Of a stretch of DNA of 64,000 nucleotides, positions 1,166 to 25,800 are shown piece after piece (the stretch's first letter is position 1; each line of letters opens with the position of its first letter). This stretch comes from Orbicella franksi (lineage: Eukaryota): contig OZ116698.1 of assembly GCA_964199315.1 (NCBI GenBank), positions 9,610,001 through 9,674,000 of the forward strand, in the 5' to 3' direction. The notes under the pieces were generated by a model. The model saw only the letters and a program-made list of their open reading frames with translations, did no database searches and had not been told where the DNA came from. The translations under genes and the position numbers were made by a program.

Positions 1166-3013
1166 GTCTTCAAATCATCTTACAAATTCGCGAATGTCAA
1201 CCTCGATATTCTTATAAAATGCAAAAAGAAGAGTGTAACGTTGATTGTACGCGAGTCGCAGATCACTTACGTTATCACTGTTTGGAACGATGTGATTGGA
1301 CAGTTTCAATTTGTCAAACGTTGCTCCTTGCGCCATCCAGTACTGCCCCAAGCTGGCCGAGTTGACATGCAGGTATTTGCTGTGAGTGTGGTCCAACTGA
1401 ATTCCTTTCCCAGCAGAGACCCACCCTTGGTCGGGCTTGTGGCGGTAGCGGTTAGGATCAACGGCGACGACTTCCACTGAACAGCCGTAGTACTGGTCGG
1501 GCTCGAGTCCGGCGAGACAGAAGTCTGGCACAGGGAACATTCGCCTAAAAACGTTTAACATAGAGACATTAGGTAGGAATGAAAAGCAATATGGGTAAAA
1601 TGTAAGAAAAATATTGAAATATTTCACGTCTCGTCTAGCCTGTACGTAAAAATATAATAGGTGAAAAACGCACCCAACAGGCAAAAGAAAGGAGGGAATA
1701 TTGAAAAATCTGGCTGCTTTCAAACAACACCATGAAAATTTGACAACGCAATTTCAATGACCACTATAGATTTCCGAAATGAAATGTTTAGTAATCCTGC
1801 CGCCCATTTTCTCTGGTCTGCTCGAAACTCGAAACAAAAGTATTGAAACTCCACCCAAATGCTTATTAAAAAGCGCACAAACTTGAGACAAACTTGAACA
1901 AGGCTCGGTTGCCCATGCTTCCGGAATTTTAGTTTAGCGACGACGAAAACAACTTAATAACTTATTTTCGCAGACTCTTTGTAAAGTTTTGAATTCCAGA
2001 TAAAGGCATTTGAATGGACCATTATTTGTGTTCTTGTTTACTAGCTGTTTCATCGGACAAAACAATAAAACACTTTTTTTAAGAAGGTTTGTTCACGGCG
2101 AAATTTCATATGCAGGACATGCTTTTTCAAAACTGTGTTTTGCCCAATTACAGCTCTGCGGACCTCCCAGGAGATGTTTGAGTCAAAACGAGCACGACCA
2201 TTGAAAAGAAACTTTTTAAGTAAACAGAAAACTATTTGCATAAATTCTACTTTGTAGGGAAAAAATCCGGAATTGTTTTTTGGCTTTCTGGTTAGCAAAG
2301 GATTTTCAAAAATTTAAAATTCGTTTTAGCTTCCTTTCAAACGTTAAGAGTCATAACTGCTTTCTAAGCTGCGCGTTGCGGTTTTGTAGTTGGTGTAAGA
2401 AGATCAAAAACCAACGAAAACTTATTTTATTCAGTCTCGTATGCAAATAATTGTTGTTTTGCGCTGGAAATTGTTTGTGCAAGGTTAAAATCGAACTTTT
2501 ATCCTCTACAAGGTAAAAATCAGAGTTTGTAATGTCCCAAATAGAGATGGCCAGTCACGGAAACAAAACTGACTTATCCCTCCCAGACCCGTCATGTCAC
2601 CAACAAACAACGAATTCTTTTGGGATGTCATTCTATACCCATTTAGTTTCTACCCTTAAAACGTACAAATTGAACGAGAACACAAACCTCCCAGCCTTAG
2701 TGATAATCATTTCTGTTTCCTCACGATGAAACGTCATCCAGAGTTCCTGATTTCGGAGACGCGCTGAAATCGTTCTGCCCTCGCCCTCCATGGCCGTTCT
2801 GTTGGTTGCCGAGGCTTTCTTCCTTGGGGCCTCGCAACGTCTTTTGGATTTGGAATTCTGATCCTGCGCATCTGGGTTCGGCTTTGAAACTTGGACCCGT
2901 GAAGAATGTGTTTCAGCTACCACAGTTTCGGGGCACGTGTCTGATCGAAGCGTGGATATCGGAATCTCACCATCGGCTTGTTTACAAATAGACTTCGAAA
3001 TCGACTCATCCAT
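1..3013 (-). CDS. T-box transcription factor, divergent; 3' end lies outside the window
   Basis: Phase-consistent GT-AG exons 3013-2688, 1544-1271, 195-1 encode [19 protein letters not shown]|RMFP...FDKLKLSN...N|VVVSSMQKY...[14 protein letters not shown]...[14 protein letters not shown], a complete T-box domain. Subfamily not assignable by eye. Confidence 0.95.
785..1011. mobile_element. MITE-like palindromic element in T-box intron
   Basis: Terminal inverted repeat (TIR) GAGGTTAAGCATGACGTT / AACGTCATGCTTAACCTC with inner ACGGCAA repeats mirrored as TTGCCGT. Confidence 0.8.
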
Positions 3014-4264
3014 TTCTGAAAAGCTGCACAACTAGCGTAAAAAGTCTTCACAGTAAACGATCAAGCTTAGGCCAGGACGTGCAAAGACTGAATCTGGACA
3101 ATGATCACCAAACTTAAATAGCGTGGATCAAGACAATAAAGATGTTTTACTTTAATTGGTTTTTATTTGGACGCGTCCTTTCAAAAAGCAAATATCTCAC
3201 CTTGAATCAACCAATTAGCCAAGAAAGCAATGTCTTTTGTGATGGATTCTCCGTTCAGTCTGTGAATTTCCTTTAGTGCTTTCACCTTAATTCTTTTGTT
3301 TGTAATTTCTTTTTAAAAAGCATCAAAAGCGATTATAATTTACCCCTGATAGTTTAAGCCCGATATACTGTCAAAGCAAATCACTATGATGAAAAAAGCT
3401 CTGGCTAAGTTTGTTGGCTGAGATCTTGAAAGTGTTTAAGCTCGTTTTAACTTGAAACTTCCGATTTCTAAATAATTCCGTTAGGTAATCAAACCGGAAA
3501 CGTGACTGTTTATAAAAAAATATCTGAGTTTGTTCCATTCAGGAGTGATCATGAGAGTGATGAATTTTTAGCATGCTTAACAGTTGGAAGTGATCATTAA
3601 ATACGCTCGTAAAAGCTTGGGCGGTATCCTCTCAAAAGATGTTCAAGTTGGAAGTTAGTAAAATTCTTGATGCAAAAGAAAATTGTTGAAATTGTAAGCG
3701 AGCGACAGTGAATAAACAACAAATTCACCTGAAAAGCGTCCATACAGGAGTTCATCTTAGTGGCAACATTTGACAGATGCGTCAAATTTGAATCTTGTAT
3801 CATTGCCTATTTTCTGAGTGTTCCATTCATTTAAGGTGTTTCTCTGAGATATACTTCTCGAAAGCCTTTTCACATGCTAATTCTTTGAAAAACGATCAAT
3901 TATCCGGCTAATTTTTCGGCAGCCTAACCGTTGCATTGCGGATAGCGAAAAGAACAAACAGCTACATCTCGCGCAGAAATCATTACCCTGAATCTCCGAT
4001 CATACTTCGCGCACGAGTCAACAGTTCATTGCAGTTTTTACTTGCAAGCCGTTTATAATTTACTAAAGGAGTGCAAACACTCAACATAAAAGCTTTTGTC
4101 ACCTATTATGTGTGACATTTGGGTTTGGGCTCCACCCATGGGAAATCAGTCTGTGCACCGCCCATGCAATTCTTATGAGTCATAACTTCCTTTTCACGTA
4201 CTGAAGGTTAATTTAAAACAGCACGGCGTCGCTTTACCTTCTTTCCTATAAAATGTACTAAAAT

Positions 4265-4451
4265 TAGTCTGCGAACAGTCTCTTTTTTGCTCGAAAAAAC
4301 CGTGGGGAAGAACGCAGAGAAGAACGCAACATAACTAAGCAGTCGTGAGCGTGATACGCGAAGCCGCGAGCAGTCACGTACGCTCGCACGCTCACTTGTT
4401 TTGCGTTCTGTCCCACGCTTTTCGAGGAAAAGAGAGACTGCTCGCAGTCTA
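4265..4451. mobile_element. MITE
   Basis: Imperfect TIR TAGTCTGCGAACAGTCTCTT / AAGAGAGACTGCTCGCAGTCTA. Confidence 0.75.
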
Positions 4452-5448
4452 TTCCTAAATCGGCTCTACCTTATTTTTATTTGATAAAAAAGGCGCTCAA
4501 TTTTGACGTTCGTCATTGCAGATCAACTATGATTTTTAGTGAATGGACAATCGTATTGTGATATATTTTTTCGGTATCTAACAACAGCTTCCTTTGTTAG
4601 GACGCTAAACCGGCATCACTTTTTCTGTTTTATTTCATCTGTATTGTTTTCGTTTTAAAATGCTTTTATAAATGGCATGACGCCTTTTCAGGTTTTATAA
4701 CACTAGTGTCGAGTCCAAACATGCGAAGGCCGGGCAAGTGCGAAAAGCGGAAATCGAGTGTTCTGAGCATTTTTAAAACATCGTGTGTTACGGCGTCCGA
4801 ACTGGGTTGTGTTATTCTCTAAATGCACATAAGCAAACAAGGACAAATCCGCCTGCAAATCTCCAAGTTTTGCCAGACAGTTTGACATCGCTTTAGTAAG
4901 ACATCATTTTTCATGTTTAAAAGTCTGAATAAAGTTAACACCGAGAAATCACCTTTTTGGTAATGACAACTGTGCTCAAGAAAGAAACGAGAATTAAACA
5001 GCGGGCGTGTTTTTTAAAAACACGAAAGAGTGAAATGACAAAATGGCACTACGGAAAGAGTCAACGAGGATTACGAGCTAACCACTTTCGCGTCATGTGA
5101 TATTCAGGCTAACCTGAGCGCTATTTAGCCTAAAGGAAGTGCTATTTCGTCAATTAATTGAGAAGCAAGCAATTCAAAAGCTCGCGGCACGACGTACAGA
5201 ATTCAACGAGTTCACTCCCGACTCTCAACTAACCATTCTTAACTGCAATACTAAATTATCGAGAGATCAGCCAACCAGGTTCAGAGACGAGGAATTTGAG
5301 GTTAATTAAAAATAACAGACTGGCCATTCTACATGCTTACAACCTTGGCCTACACGCAATCAGTGCAGGCGCTGAGTAGTGGCAGCGCTCTAAGTCAGCG
5401 TCCACACCACGCCGGGAAAATTAAAAAACGAGAGTTATTTCTATGGTT

Positions 5449-5777
5449 AGGCCGTCCACACTAATCCATCAAGAAAACGGAGCTCTTTCGAAAACGCTCT
5501 TTTCGCTGTTCAAACCGGAGGAATTTGAAAACGTCGGCTTTGCGTTTCCGTGTGGACGGAAAACATTTTCAAAACTGAGCTTTTCGAAAACGATGTAGTC
5601 ATGGTAATCAAGTGATTCTCCTCCTGCCGAAGTTTTTCTTAAAAACATATATCTAAAATGACCGGTGATTGTTGCGTATTTAAATTCCTCCGGCGTAGTG
5701 TGAACGGAAAACTTTTGATGCGTCCACAGAGGAAAACCTCCGTTTTCAAACTCCTCCGGCGCAGTGTGAACGGGGCT
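5449..5777. mobile_element. MITE, AGGCCCCGTCCACAC family, copy 1
   Basis: Ends AGGCC(CC)GTCCACACTA / CAGTGTGAACGGGGCT; internal TTTTCGAAAA and CTCCGGCGTAGTGT motifs shared with the copy at 33020-33288. Confidence 0.7.
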
Positions 5778-6735
5778 CGAGTAGAAGAATTTGAGTTTCT
5801 TTTAACTATATTATAGGAATAACCTGGGTATTTTTTTCTCCTTGCTCATATTTTACATCAACTCTCTACGAAGATCATATTGGAACCCCGATCTTTCAAA
5901 CCTCCATCAGTAAGCAGTTTCTCTCACCTCCCTACTTTTCGAACTAATTTCCGTTTCCCTTGGTGGTTCGAAACATTGAGATTCCACCATAGTACTTAGT
6001 GAAAACCAGCTGTCGCCGTATGAATCTTTGACGAGTTTCATTTTTCTCGTGACGGGTAGTCTGTGTAAATCCGCCCCCTTCCCCGGAAGAAAAGGTCAGG
6101 GAGAGAGGGGAGGGGGCAGATGTACACAAGCTAGCGAGGGGCCACAAAAGCGTTCAGAGAGGGGGAACTATCTGTTTTGATACATAAAGGAAATGGACCA
6201 GCCTGAAAACCACCTGAGGGTGAGGTTGCCTCTTGGTTAAAGATATATTTTTTTATTTTTAAGGAAATCACCCAGTTTTGACATATGAGGGAGTCAAGTT
6301 GATTCATCCGACCAAAAGAATATGTATTTAAAATAACGCCTTAGTGACCTAAAACTACTGCTTTTTGACTCCGTTTCAGAGATTTCGTGCGGTATCACAA
6401 AATAATAACCTATTTGTGTTGTGCATTGAAAATCAACAAAGCACTTTAAACTTCAAACAAATTTGAACTAGTACATGAAGTGATTCAACTCCACCGTGAG
6501 TTGTCAAAAAAACAGGCTATTCCAAAAAATTTAAAAATTGAAATGTAGAAAATCAGTATATGTAGTTTTTGGAAAAACAGTGTTCAAGGAGATTTTGTGT
6601 GCTAAAGATTTTCTGACACTTTGATTGTCAGACTGACAACAAAGTCTTCTTTACAAGACACATATATCTTCAAGTCTAACAGTTTTGCTTCTTTGAAATA
6701 AATACAAAATATAAATGTTTTTTTAAATCAGTCCA

Positions 6736-21500: not shown

Positions 21501-22485
21501 AATAATAGTTCGAAACGATTAAAAAGGGTTTTTGAAAAGACAGCAGACTTTGTTTTTCTGGAAAAGCGAAATTAAAAATTTAAGAAACGTGACCTGAAAA
21601 CCAAGCTCACATTTTCCACAAGCTTATAACATGAAGGATTTTCTGTCTTTTAAATATTTTACCTGAGGCTGTCTCCGTTTTTGTTTCCTTCTCTGTCGCC
21701 TCGTCTGTCTTTTTCCTTCTCCGCAACTCCTTATCACTCTCCTCGGGTAGAGAATCTTTGGTTTCGCTCTCTGTTTTAGTCGCGACGTCTCCATTCTTAG
21801 CTTCAACTTTCGGGGCGCCATGAGAGTGTCCATGTCCTCCTTTAACTAGCCGAACAAACTTCTCTACCATGAGAAAAGCTATCAAGCCAGCTAGAACCCA
21901 GAGACCGACTACCATTTCTGACGAATGATCATGATGGCCGCCTGCTTCGTGGCTGTGTGAGTGCGAGTGAGAATGCGAATGTTCATGGCCGTCTTCTCCT
22001 CCGTGTGAATGCGGTGAAATCGCATGAGGAATTAAATGGAGAAATGCATCCCCCAAGAGGCCTCCTGAGGCAAAAGCCAGAAGAACCTTCAACAGAGGTT
22101 GCTGTTCGGCCGAGTTGCTTTGTAGTGGAATGAAAAACAAGATGAAGAACGGTGCTGCGCTGATCAGCAGAGTGGCGGCAATAGCTTGAAGCCACTTGGA
22201 CAGGTTTCCGCCTTGATCAGATAGCTTAGGAGAGGTCCCAGTCCCGTGATGAGGCACTTTCATCTTAACATCTTCCGAGTGATGATCGTGGCTGTGCCCG
22301 TGATGATCGTGGCTATGGCCATGATGGTGGTGGCTGTGATCATGATGATGGTGATGATGCTGTTTTTCGTGAGGGTGTTCGTGAACATGATCGGTTTCGT
22401 GTTCTCCGTCACTATGCATACCATTTATTGCTGAAAAGAGGAAAAGCAAGAGAAAAACACAGTGCATCCTTCCTCTTAGAGCCAT
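18515..22485 (-). CDS. SLC39A7: Zinc transporter ZIP7, ~430 aa
   Basis: Exons 22485-21663, 19673-19456, 18766-18515 in phase; signal peptide, His-rich N-terminus, [80 protein letters not shown]. Confidence 0.97.
20117..20302. mobile_element. MITE
   Basis: TIR ATAGATCCTTTTCATAAATGGCTGCCAATT / AATTGGCAGCCATTTATAAAGTGTCTAT. Confidence 0.7.
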
Positions 22486-22843
22486 TGTTAGGAGAGCCAC
22501 AGATCGATGACAACTTGTTTGCCGACTTGCCGGTGACTGTGTCGGTGACTTTTACCGGTGTCTACGCCTGTCGTACCTCTTGTCAGCTGGTTGACGTGGC
22601 AAGCATGCGCAGAGCTAGGTAAACTTTCAAAATTCTCCCCAGTGTAACTCGCTTATAAAAAATGCGTAACTAAAAGAAACTGGGGATGAACTAAAATACC
22701 CAGAAACCCTTGCAACAAGTCAGCGGTAATCCCTTAAAATGTCAATACATGAAATTAATTTCACACTTCATGTGCAATCTTTCACCATCTTCGGAGCACG
22801 TTGAAATTCTTGAATGGCTGTTCGCCAAGGGTAAGATGTATTT
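22486..22843. promoter_or_regulatory. Bidirectional promoter region SLC39A7 / makorin
   Basis: Divergent coding starts ~360 bp apart. Confidence 0.6.
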
Positions 22844-25800
22844 ATGATTTCTGCTTTCTTGTTTTCTTCTCAGTTCCTTACGATCGTTTGTCTCCCAAGG
22901 TCAACGTCGGCAACCAAACAAATCTTGTGCAGGTACGATTCCGGGTTGTTACCGGCGGATTTCTATTTTTAAGTTATTTGAGGATCTTGTCTTTTTTTTT
23001 TTTTTTTTTTTTTTTCTGTACGGCAGTCTATTATGAAGGTCCTAACGATAGAAATCTTACGTGCCCACAATGGACAAGTTAATATATCTTGTCACCGTCA
23101 GAAGTTCCCGTTTTCTGTTAGTAGTACCCTTCCATCCAAATTCCTGGGCTTTATCTAAAATAATCATTTAGAGGTTAAGTTTAATTAAATTTATCTTGCA
23201 TTTTTCCCCGCTCACTGCCCTGTTATCTTTTGACCTTAGCCTTGTAGCTTTGTAGGGTCTTCTCACCAGGATCCTGGTCCCTGCAATTGTGCCTCCCCCC
23301 CACCTCCAAACACACACACTTCACAAGAGAGTTGTTAATTAAACTCTTTATGGAAATAACAAAATAGTTTTTGAGTAAGGTTACATGGAATGGATCAGAG
23401 GGCACACCATGTCTGCGCACTTTGCTAAGAAGGAGTGTGCCTAGAAGTGACATAAAGAAATTAAGGCCCAGTTCAGACGTCATGCTCTTGCCGTGCCGAA
23501 CTAAATTCAGGATTTAAGTCCGAGAAAAGCACAGCAGAAGCACGGTGTCTGAATCAAACTTTTGCATTAAGTTTGGCAAGCAATTAAGCTCAACAAGCTC
23601 TGCCATGCTACACGACTCTGGCACGGCAGTGATTCAGACGTTGTGCTTTTGCCACGCTAAACAAAATTCATAAATTATATTAATATATTTTGGTGAGATT
23701 GTGTTCCCACGGGGAGTTAGGAGGAGAATTGCTACGAGGCATCAGTAAATGCTGAATTTGGTTCGACTCTGGCACGCCGTCTGAATCAGAGTTGTTTCTT
23801 TCCCGTGCTATAGTCGAACCAAATTGCAATTAAGTTTGGTACAGCAGAAGCACGACGTCTGAACTGGGCCTAAACTGCAGCATCATTCAGTAGGCCTAAA
23901 ACAGGGATGAGGGATGAGATTATTACAAGCTACCTATAAACATGTTAACCTGAGCATTGTTCAGGTTTACTGGAGTGGTATTCAGGCTAACCCACCACCT
24001 CTTACCCCTCACCCCTCACTCCTCACCCCTCACCCCTCACCTCTAACTCCTCACCCCTCACTCCTTACCCTCTCTCCTCACACCTCACCCATCACCCCTC
24101 ACTTCTTATCTCACTCGTCAACCATCACTCTTCACTCCTCACCCTTTACCTCTTGCCCCTCACCCCCTCACTCCTCACCCCTGGCCCCTGGCCCCTCACC
24201 TCTCATCCCCATTTTTGACTGATTCCTCTTCCCAAGTTGTGTTCAGAGGTGATGCAAGATCACTCTGAATACATGTAAAGTTACGTCACTCTATATTTTC
24301 CCGCTCCCCACAATGGCAGTTACCGTATGTAGGAAGTAATCTGTCGGGGACTCAGAATTTTTCTTTGTCCCACGCTCGTGTCATGTTGATTAATTCACCT
24401 TCACATTTCATTACCGAGCTTAGAATTCACCATCTTTATTAACTTATCACTACTCACGATGAATTCGATAGCGTTGATCCTAGCAGTATGCAGGACACCT
24501 ATCATATATGAACTCAGTGAAATGACCTTGCTCTCCATGAGTTCTCGTAGCTCAGTGGATAGAGCGCCTGCCCGGTGTTCAGGAGGTCATGGGTTCGATT
24601 CCTGTCGGGGACTCAGAATTTTTCTTTGTCCCACGCTCGTGTCATGTTGATTAATTTCACCTTCACATAGGAAGTAATCTGTTATTAATTTAATTAAGGT
24701 ACTATGTGCATGGAGTCTGCAGGGAAGGAGAAAACTGCCAGTATTCACACGACTTAAAAGATAAACCGTCAATGGTATGTCATCTTTGTAATTTATGGCA
24801 TTTTAGTGTTATTACTGTCAAAATATTTCCACAAGTCGAAGAATGCAGCCGCCCAGTTCCAATTATTGCTTTGACTTTGTTTGTTTCCTGAAAGTGAAGG
24901 TAAAGGTGACTTGCACTAGGGTCTCAAATTGTCTGTATCTTAACATATTATGGCTTGTAGTAAACAATAAATTGATTAATGCTTTAGTATGCATGGCATC
25001 ATCAAGTTATGATGCAGATGGCAAGATGAGAGAACACAAAAGAAGCATAAGAGTTTCATGAGGTACAGCCGAGATCAACTTAGCTTCTTGAGTGCTCTCC
25101 AAATGTCTTATAATAAGCGTGTTGTAACTTGATAATGCACAGTTCAAAGTTTCATAACATTACCAATAGAAATGACGAAGCCAAGTATGCTTTGCTCAAA
25201 CCATGAGTGTGCATGATTAGATTTTATAAAATACGTGAGATACTATACATGCTCCCATTGGTTGATAGGTGTTTTCAGGTGAGAGTATGTAAACACAGTT
25301 GTGACGTTTTAGATTTGAGAAATATTTTATAAAAGGAATAGAGTACTTAAATTTCAGTGTTTACAAAGCCTCATAGCCTCATCTAAACACTGGGAAGGAG
25401 TGTTGGGAAAATTCTTGAGATGTAGTCAAGGGCTTGCATAAGTGTCTTGAATTCTCTGAACGCCCCTTGTGTTTAGAAGAGGCTATGTAAACACAGAAAA
25501 AGTGCTCTATTGCTTAAATGGTGCACACTTATGTATACTTAGTTTGATAGCACAACTTTTATGGCTATGTTATAGTGTCATTCTGGCAGAACTTTTTAAC
25601 CCAATAACCTGTAATAAAGAGACACTTTTACAGTATCATTGTAATATTTTCAAGCATAATTTGGAGTGTTTATTTCATAGATTTGTAAGTATTATCTACA
25701 AGGAGCATGTTCCTATGGAAACAGTTGTCGTTTTGACCATGTCAAGCCACCATCTGGAAGGTACTGTATACCTGATTTGATAAACATCATTTTACTAGTC

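Follow-up and report, generated by a model that had tools for sequence, protein, structure and literature searches.

A 261-bp coral retroelement with a tRNA-like module instead of a hammerhead and with Penelope-type insertion architecture

Results

Structure of the insertion in the window

A stretch of 64,000 nucleotides (nt) from the stony coral Orbicella franksi was analyzed (NCBI GenBank assembly GCA_964199315.1, contig OZ116698.1, positions 9,610,001 to 9,674,000 of the forward strand; the whole stretch is called the window here). Positions 24345-24667 of the window probably arose by the recent insertion of a non-autonomous retroelement with a non-coding unit of 261 bp; this element represents lineage type I of a larger superfamily. 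The element would have been mobilized by a Penelope-like element (PLE), it carries a tRNA-like module that appears to be kept as an RNA fold, and it seems to have been copied from a unit-length template. A preliminary description of the window, made from the sequence alone, had proposed a retrozyme-like element without a ribozyme, and this proposal was supported by the analyses reported below.

The sequence TAGGAAGTAATCTGT is present twice, with 15 of 15 nt identical, and is the target-site duplication (TSD) of the window copy (positions of all features are compiled in Table 1). The 323 nt between the two TSD copies comprise 1.25 copies of a unit of 261/262 bp, and the overlap is visible as a 55-nt identity with an offset of 261 nt (24341-24395 equals 24602-24656). 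The permuted insert of 1.25 units flanked by a TSD, as it had been described before, was thus borne out, and the length of the TSD could be refined to 10-15 nt, with the last 4 nt (CTGT) doubling as the end of the T-stem of the unit. In addition, the first T of the TSD is also the last base of the unit, and thus microhomology is found at both junctions. Neither poly(A) nor a microsatellite is present at the 3′ junction. Positions within the unit were numbered from U1 (24407) to U262 (24668); in this numbering U135-206 are the tRNA, U207 is the discriminator, and U213-217 are a run of five T residues (T5). The window copy deviates from the family majority at 5 positions.

Genomic copies and their ends

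With a 27-nt pattern that spans the anticodon arm and had to match exactly, at least 448 modules of the family were found in the 497-Mb stony-coral genome. A search with the 323-nt insert yielded 119 scored matches with 90-100% identity out of 1111 candidates. To map the architecture, 30 loci were fetched, which represent 25-26 independent insertions, and were placed on the unit. The mapped type I copies are seamless head-to-tail arrays of 1.2-6.6 units, and 17 of the 25-26 insertions (about two thirds) have a second, inverted arm in a head-to-head arrangement. The inner ends of the arms, i.e., the 5′ truncation points, are dispersed over the unit, with a loose excess at U192-235 only and without a peak at U135 or U207. 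The outer ends fall at two fixed sites, site A at U259-262 (...CCTTCACA[T]) and site B at U41-49 (...CTTATCA[CTACT]). The two sites are AC-rich, lie 43-49 nt (about 44 nt) apart, and are located 54 nt and about 100 nt, respectively, 3′ of the tRNA. Of the two-armed copies, 15 had mappable ends, and each of these has one arm that terminates at A (U259-262) and one that terminates at B (U41-57); one of the 15 (L030) was resolved by eye, because a deletion had concealed its B end from BLAST. The target duplications are 9-18 nt long in 16 insertions and overlap the element ends by 1-4 nt of microhomology. Type I copies in coral metagenome contigs of other samples also end at site A or B. The preliminary description had named scattered permuted breakpoints in a genome-wide BLAST mapping as support for a circular or multimeric template; the inner ends are scattered, whereas the outer ends are restricted to two sites. 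The arrays, the inverted arms and the one-sided A/B tail support the earlier assignment of the permuted partial-tandem insert to the Penelope-like type.

The presence of a tRNA-related module with A and B boxes could also indicate a tRNA-derived short interspersed nuclear element (SINE), which was moved by a long interspersed nuclear element (LINE), with twin priming and local duplication as the source of the rearranged copies. LINE target-primed reverse transcription also gives rise to 5′ truncation and to TSDs of 10-16 nt. This explanation is very improbable and is already contradicted by the architecture of the mapped copies: a poly(A) or microsatellite tail is absent, the tRNA is never located at the 5′ end and a conserved leader lies ahead of it, there are two fixed ends about 44 nt apart with always one of them per arm, two thirds of the copies have inverted arms, and the arrays comprise up to 6.6 units. 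The view of the preliminary description that this is not an ordinary SINE was thus upheld.

Permuted partial tandems and homogeneity at the level of the monomers would also be expected from an amplification at the DNA level, in which a small satellite or an extrachromosomal circular DNA is amplified by a rolling-circle mechanism and reintegrated. However, random breakage of circles would scatter the outer ends, whereas these are fixed at two sites, the tail is strictly one-sided, and the head-to-head arms both point outward in the same sense. Furthermore, the ends are accompanied by TSDs typical of staggered cuts, and these features match the scar of bona fide PLE copies in the same genome (see below). 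Such an origin is therefore regarded as extremely improbable.

Several of the loci have additional features. The loci L010 and L009 (G000:C5:15389137-15389954 and C5:15415869-15416425) are duplicates with identical flanks that differ by exactly one unit, and thus arrays also alter after insertion. Four near-identical copies are present at G000:C3:8859409, 8878190, 8904718, and 8940080. With their spacing of 19-35 kb and their identical flanks, these repeats on C5 and C3 are segmental duplications that carry the element. At L029 (G000:C2:27907611-27910930) a type I array is surrounded by clustered tRNA genes that appear to be genuine (Gln-TTG, Gln-CTG, Gly-TCC) and that have a T-run each. At L025 a type I insertion ends next to another tRNA-like module (2718-2789, minus strand; Ser-TGA by position and devoid of a long variable arm), which may belong to another tRNA-derived repeat family.

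Signs of Penelope-like mobilization

Hallmarks of PLE insertions are tandem pseudo-long terminal repeats (pLTRs) or partial tandems, an upstream inverted 5′-truncated copy, and a tail of 30-40 bp at one end only (PMC8557442). Frangieh et al. reported that a purified PLE protein cuts and extends both DNA strands, and that reverse transcription (RT) is initiated at two neighboring internal positions within an AC-rich region, which delimit the tail (PMC11167929). In the same study hammerhead cleavage was found to be dispensable in vitro for the PLE that was used. The spacing and the AC-richness of sites A and B fit this published start-site scheme. By analogy, the outer ends of the tRNA-bearing element would represent two internal RT start sites and could be explained without any RNA cleavage.

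Two loci of the same genome served as a control. L075 and L076 are 5′-truncated copies of PLEs that encode an RVT_1 domain together with a GIY-YIG domain at the C terminus, and they have head-to-head arms. In L076 one arm is about 25 nt longer than the other, i.e., the tail is one-sided, and the TSD has a length of about 9 nt. In both copies (L075:3769-6371 and L076:3486-6358) a motif resembling a hammerhead (TGATAATGACCGAAGAGCGGTCGAAAC) lies some 60 nt ahead of the ends. Based on the A/B scar and on this control, PLE-type mobilization is regarded as well supported. A PLE enzyme would nick both DNA strands and would prime RT of the tRNA-sense RNA of the element at sites A and B.

One end motif of L075/L076 (CCCTTACTGAT) is loosely similar to site B of the tRNA-bearing element (AACTTATCACT). 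From more than 1000 PLE (GIY-YIG) candidates 34 loci were sampled (30 GIY-YIG loci and 4 longer PLE loci), and no tRNA modules were found within them. A recurring match of 20-22 nt with 82-85% identity, located just 3′ of the GIY-YIG domain, was taken as noise (E 8.5). The pLTRs in L073 and L074 were not resolved. L073 harbors a long intact PLE frame of 796 amino acids with RT and GIY-YIG (4180-6567, minus strand). The top Rfam hammerhead loci of the genome are single degraded copies and not arrays.

Evidence for a probable unit-length template

The units of each insertion were compared with the majority-rule unit, which served as a yardstick. The overall divergence of the units from the family majority is 1.4%. 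The majority of all differences (168) are confined to single units, as is expected for changes that occurred after insertion. A further 15 variants extend over all units of the respective insertion, in several cases on both inverted arms. The variant U23A>C has three occurrences in the genome, and all of them are in L012, where it is found on both arms in all 3 unit copies. The variants U136T>G and U50A>T are present at 3 loci each. At two of these loci, L024 and L028, all units carry the variant; the remaining four loci have it once (three loci) or once per arm (one locus). In L021 and L025 the two arms carry different sets of variants, each of which is uniform within its arm. If a mutated genomic array were transcribed, the variant would be transmitted in one unit only, and inverted arms are not homogenized by crossing-over. 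In the simplest reading, there would be a bottleneck of a single unit in each round. Most likely, a single unit is reiterated as the template, probably in the form of a unit-length circular RNA; seamless copying or switching among many identical monomers would give an equal result. A circular or multimeric template had already been considered in the preliminary description, and a reiterated, unit-length and possibly circular RNA indeed best explains the copies, with their private variants in every unit and their seamless joints.

At the mapped loci, none of the outer ends, the inner ends, or the unit joints coincides with the 5′ or the 3′ boundary of the tRNA, and a recurrent small indel scar was not found at any unit position in about 60 unit joints. 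The ends of the insert do not appear to be set by the tRNA module. In the multi-unit arms several tRNA modules are passed without a cut. Since the template RNA has the sense of the tRNA, it includes the U-run. Transcription by RNA polymerase III (Pol III) from the tRNA promoter would normally end 6 nt behind the tRNA and would not extend to sites A and B. Given that the tRNA boundaries are free of ends and that such a transcript would terminate at the T-run, a longer or a reiterated RNA must have been the template. Two suggestions of the preliminary description, i.e., that tRNA processing by RNase P/Z sets the insert ends and that the Pol III promoter is the source of the template, were thus not sustained.

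Two other models were rejected. The tRNA boundaries could not serve as element ends or joints, in view of the scattered inner ends, the missing peaks at U135 and U207, and the missing indel scars. Run-off or read-through transcription by Pol III was rejected as a source of the multi-unit arms, because a start at U135 and the passage of one T5 would yield arms of no more than about 177 nt.

The tRNA-like module

ARAGORN and Rfam both call a tRNA at 24541-24613/4, which is Thr-GGT by position; the score for RF00005 is 48.8 bits (gathering score 29, E 4.6e-9). The complete cloverleaf, with the stems that had been listed before, was thereby confirmed. It was also verified that a T5 run (24619-24623) follows the module, beginning 6 nt past the discriminator, and that a tail is absent. 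The description of the anticodon arm had to be modified. A stem is present, but the pairing CCTG/CAGG occurs only in the window copy, whereas the majority of the family has CCCG/CGGG, and the 7-nt loop is effectively a 9-nt loop. Positions 31 and 39 of the tRNA do not pair in any of the 19 modules of alignment A3 (columns 31 and 39), which come from four lineages. The loop CCGGU(G/A)U without U33 (A3 columns 32-38) is carried by about 2,400 modules of the genome; its sequence was fixed by the search pattern, and loop conservation is thus no independent evidence.

The T/A anticodon pair of the window copy is the result of two CpG transitions and was found in 1 of 448 modules, which is about the chance expectation: the two single changes have frequencies of about 7% and 6% (among the first 100 modules listed), from which about 2 doubles are expected by chance. 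This pair was therefore rejected as evidence for compensation, and within the young type I family the cloverleaf has no compensatory signal. An Rfam search of both strands of the unit, up to an E value of 10, did not reveal any ribozyme and had the tRNA as its only match. A hammerhead core of the form CUGAUGA...GAAA was also not seen when the unit was inspected by eye.

Lineages, covariation and the trailer hairpin

As judged from sequence comparisons, type I is a member of a coral-wide superfamily with at least four lineages. Type II is a 253-bp family (L077); its leader (35 nt) and tRNA have 75% identity to those of type I, and nothing else can be aligned. A pattern based on the loop revealed 1965 further modules in the genome, including the 250-bp type III (L078-L082). 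With a longer pattern at least 120 coral metagenome contigs were found, which contain types I-III and, in addition, type IV. Types I-IV have the same order of elements, i.e., leader, tRNA, T-run, and a pyrimidine/AC-rich end motif 55-80 nt past the tRNA; the end motifs of the four types are CCTTCACA, CATCTTTCACA, CCATCTTTTCTTA, and AACTTCACATCA. The A box, the B box and the T-run are intact in all lineages. DNA and RNA sequencing runs under several coral labels hold parts of the stretch, but the element itself is not resolved by them.

One locus contains two of the lineages. At L079 (595-1196, plus strand; G000:C1:5953000-5955200) a type I insertion of about 2.3 units is nested in a type III array; it has its own TSD of 10-12 nt (GTATGGGTAT) and a 9-nt inverted stub. 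Therefore, the two lineages were active at different times in the same place.

Covariation was analyzed with alignment A3, which contains 19 copies of the four types. In this alignment 11 of 21 pairs are altered on both sides, including 7 of 7 in the acceptor stem and 4 of 5 in the anticodon stem; only these two stems are informative, since the D arm, the loop, the 5′ strand of the T-arm, and the T-loop had been fixed by the search pattern. The fraction of paired cells is 91%, compared to 30-52% when the partners were slid by 1-3 columns, and the slid controls have at most 3 double-changed pairs. The absence of covariation had been named in the preliminary description as an observation that would speak against the fold; the acceptor and anticodon stems, however, covary between lineages. 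Promoter function needs neither of these two stems, and their maintenance therefore argues for selection on the RNA fold. The tRNA-like module would thus be maintained as a folded RNA and not only as a Pol III promoter.

In all lineages the 3′ strand of the acceptor stem is able to pair with a sequence just after the T-run and thus to enclose the T-run in a hairpin. The pairing sequences are GGGGAC...GUCCC in types I/IV and (G)AAGCC(C)UGA...UCAGGCUU(C) in types II/III; the architecture is conserved, but the sequence differs between these two groups. The hairpin was found in 15 of 19 copies; in three representative copies its energy is -11 to -12.5 kcal/mol, with z values of -2.3 to -4.3 in comparison to dinucleotide shuffles. 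In predicted 105-nt contexts the hairpin displaces the acceptor stem. The hairpin can form only in an RNA that runs past the T-run. In read-through RNA the acceptor stem would be opened by it, and long templates might thus be shielded from RNase P/Z. This suggested role is derived from essentially one deep contrast, namely that between types I/IV and types II/III.

Layout and surroundings of the window copy

The insertion is intronic and lies on the sense strand of the host gene. The neighboring exon, which encodes a CCCH zinc finger, begins 17 nt after the TSD, and the original last 32 intron bases were retained beside the exon through the duplication of the target. The preliminary description had placed the element 16 nt upstream of a 3′ splice site of a putative makorin gene. 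Shortly 5′ of the insertion, at 23972-24223, about 250 nt consist of a degenerate 7-mer/14-mer repeat of the CCTCACC type. An open reading frame (ORF) of 297 amino acids on the minus strand (21607-22500) has long His-rich runs and hydrophobic stretches, and by eye it resembles an exon of a ZIP-type metal transporter.

Table 1. Features of the window copy and of the adjoining host exon (positions in the window).
Feature	Positions	Strand	Remarks
Left TSD copy	24330-24344	.	last 4 nt (CTGT) ambiguous with the element
First partial unit, 5′-truncated (U200-U261)	24345-24406	+	from the tRNA acceptor 3′ strand to start site A
Full unit (U1-U262)	24407-24668	+	terminal T common to the TSD
Start site B (U43-49)	24449-24455	+	...CTTATCACTACT; unused in the window copy
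Leader, 35 nt, 5′ of the tRNA	24506-24540	+	kept across lineages I-IV
tRNA-like module	24541-24613	+	full cloverleaf; A box TAGCTCAGTGG; B box GGTTCGATTCC; non-canonical loop CCGGTGT
Trailer hairpin (predicted)	24606-24635	+	acceptor 3′ strand with GTCCC after the T-run; T5 (24619-24623) inside; competes with the acceptor stem
Trailer hairpin (predicted), second copy	24345-24374	+	
Start site A (U259-262)	24665-24668	+	...CCTTCACAT; 3′ junction of the window copy; internal copy at 24403-24406
Right TSD copy	24668-24682	.	
Host exon, CCCH zinc finger	24700-24774	+	3′ splice AG at 24698-24699

Discussion

Observations that weigh against the interpretation

Several observations weigh against the proposed origin of the copies. 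With respect to mobilization, the unit did not exhibit any sequence similarity to the 34 sampled PLE loci or to 12 hammerhead loci, and PLE ORFs were not found beside the modules in the metagenome contigs, in which the ORFs encode GPCR, CHAT, HEPN and similar domains. With respect to the fold, minimum free energy folding of the whole unit does not yield the cloverleaf, and the covariation, with its two informative stems, stems from about four independent lineages. The T-run retained directly behind the tRNA points to a complete Pol III gene, the product of which would not contain the RT start sites. With respect to the template, 19 variants are common to only some units of an insertion, and the homogeneity within arms may partly be due to unequal crossing-over after insertion, since L009 and L010 differ by one unit.

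The last two points would also be in accordance with another scheme, in which the element is mobilized by a PLE, but the template is a linear multimeric read-through transcript of arrays made by RNA polymerase II. The units would then be homogenized later by unequal crossing-over, and the tRNA would be a Pol III cassette or a passenger without a role as RNA. The published PLE model uses multi-copy transcripts and internal initiation without cleavage, and the conservation of A box, B box and T-run in all lineages also agrees with this scheme. However, L012 carries a genome-unique variant in every unit of both inverted arms, which crossing-over cannot achieve, the acceptor and anticodon stems covary although a promoter does not need them, and the unit joints are seamless. 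Read-through of arrays is therefore judged to be rather unlikely, and the reiteration of a single unit is the preferred explanation.

Possible role of the tRNA-like module

The most likely role of the tRNA-like module would be that of a cis-acting structured domain. It may be handled by proteins of the tRNA pathway, by the PLE ribonucleoprotein, or by both, and it might help to make or to stabilize the unit-length template. The module is located 5′ of the start sites, and this would be the same relative order as that of the hammerhead in the studied PLE. It is tempting to go one step further, although the probability of the following proposal is low, if appreciable: A tRNA-shaped RNA could have functionally replaced the hammerhead of retrozymes. 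Host enzymes of tRNA processing or tRNA ligation, or a telomerase-related PLE reverse transcriptase that binds the tRNA-like "tag", would then make a unit-length circular RNA from array transcripts, which would be reverse-transcribed round and round. The conserved hairpin of acceptor strand and T-run would switch the RNA from a processed, tRNA-like state to a protected state that serves as template, or back.

The element bears on several questions. Searches that are based on the hammerhead miss a superfamily of about 2,400 modules in one genome (448 + 1965) as well as its copies in many coral metagenome contigs. The Penelope scar, i.e., tandems, an inverted arm and a one-sided tail, could be used to find PLE passengers that are free of ribozymes. 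As to the function of the hammerhead in such elements, it appears to be dispensable here, and a tRNA fold that seems to be kept by compensatory changes is found in its place. Lastly, the 261-nt unit would be a compact natural substrate to study internal initiation by PLEs, and it might offer a route to small circular RNAs via a tRNA fold.

Comparison with known systems

A search of the full-text literature did not reveal any description of a tRNA-bearing PLE passenger. The element can be compared with four groups of retroelements. Autonomous PLEs, such as Poseidon of Anolis (PMC11167929) and L073, L075, and L076 of the genome analyzed here, also have partial tandems, an inverted 5′-truncated arm, a one-sided tail, and a TSD of about 10 nt. 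The tail of the tRNA-bearing element has a length of about 44 nt, compared to 30-40 nt for PLEs in the literature and about 25 nt for L076. In contrast to autonomous PLEs, the element does not contain an ORF, its unit has a length of only 261 bp, and it has a tRNA instead of a hammerhead.

Small-RNA genes have been recruited before by retroelements other than LINEs. Cassandra, Helenus and Ajax are non-autonomous long terminal repeat (LTR) elements, the LTRs of which contain 5S- or tRNA-like sequences (PMC10886601). The element shares with them the recruitment of a small-RNA-gene module and its repetition at both sides of the insert. LTR elements follow integrase mechanics and have TSDs of 4-6 bp, a primer-binding site, and a polypurine tract. 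Unlike them, the element has TSDs of 10-16 nt, its ends correspond to the putative RT start sites, the number of units is variable, and the arms are inverted.

With tRNA-derived SINEs the element has in common that the A and B boxes are intact, that it is non-autonomous, and that its copy number is high. It differs from them in that the tRNA is internal, behind a conserved leader, and in that the T-run 6 nt further on would halt Pol III before the RT sites. Furthermore, a LINE-like tail is missing, the ends ...CCTTCACA or ...CTTATCA directly abut the TSD, the insertions are tandem and inverted, and the cloverleaf appears to be kept by compensatory changes.

Animal non-LTR retrozymes are hammerhead-bearing, PLE-dependent tandem repeats of 170-400 nt, with a length of 220-240 bp in Acropora millepora, and they are known from many further animals (PMC7229834; bioRxiv 10.64898/2026.07.22.740005). 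Hammerhead families occur in the same genome as the tRNA-bearing element. Like animal retrozymes, the element consists of small, non-coding, AT-rich units that are present as dimers to multimers, and the TSD is longer than 4 bp; a unit-length circular RNA template and PLE dependence would, by analogy, be further common features. In contrast to retrozymes, neither a hammerhead nor another Rfam ribozyme is present, and instead a tRNA cloverleaf with a T-run lies upstream of the putative RT start sites, in the same relative order. In addition, no sequence similarity was found to the sampled hammerhead loci or to the pLTRs of the sampled PLEs. Taken together, the element behaves like an animal non-LTR retrozyme, yet it lacks the hammerhead that defines this group, and it also departs from tRNA-derived SINEs in two of their defining features.

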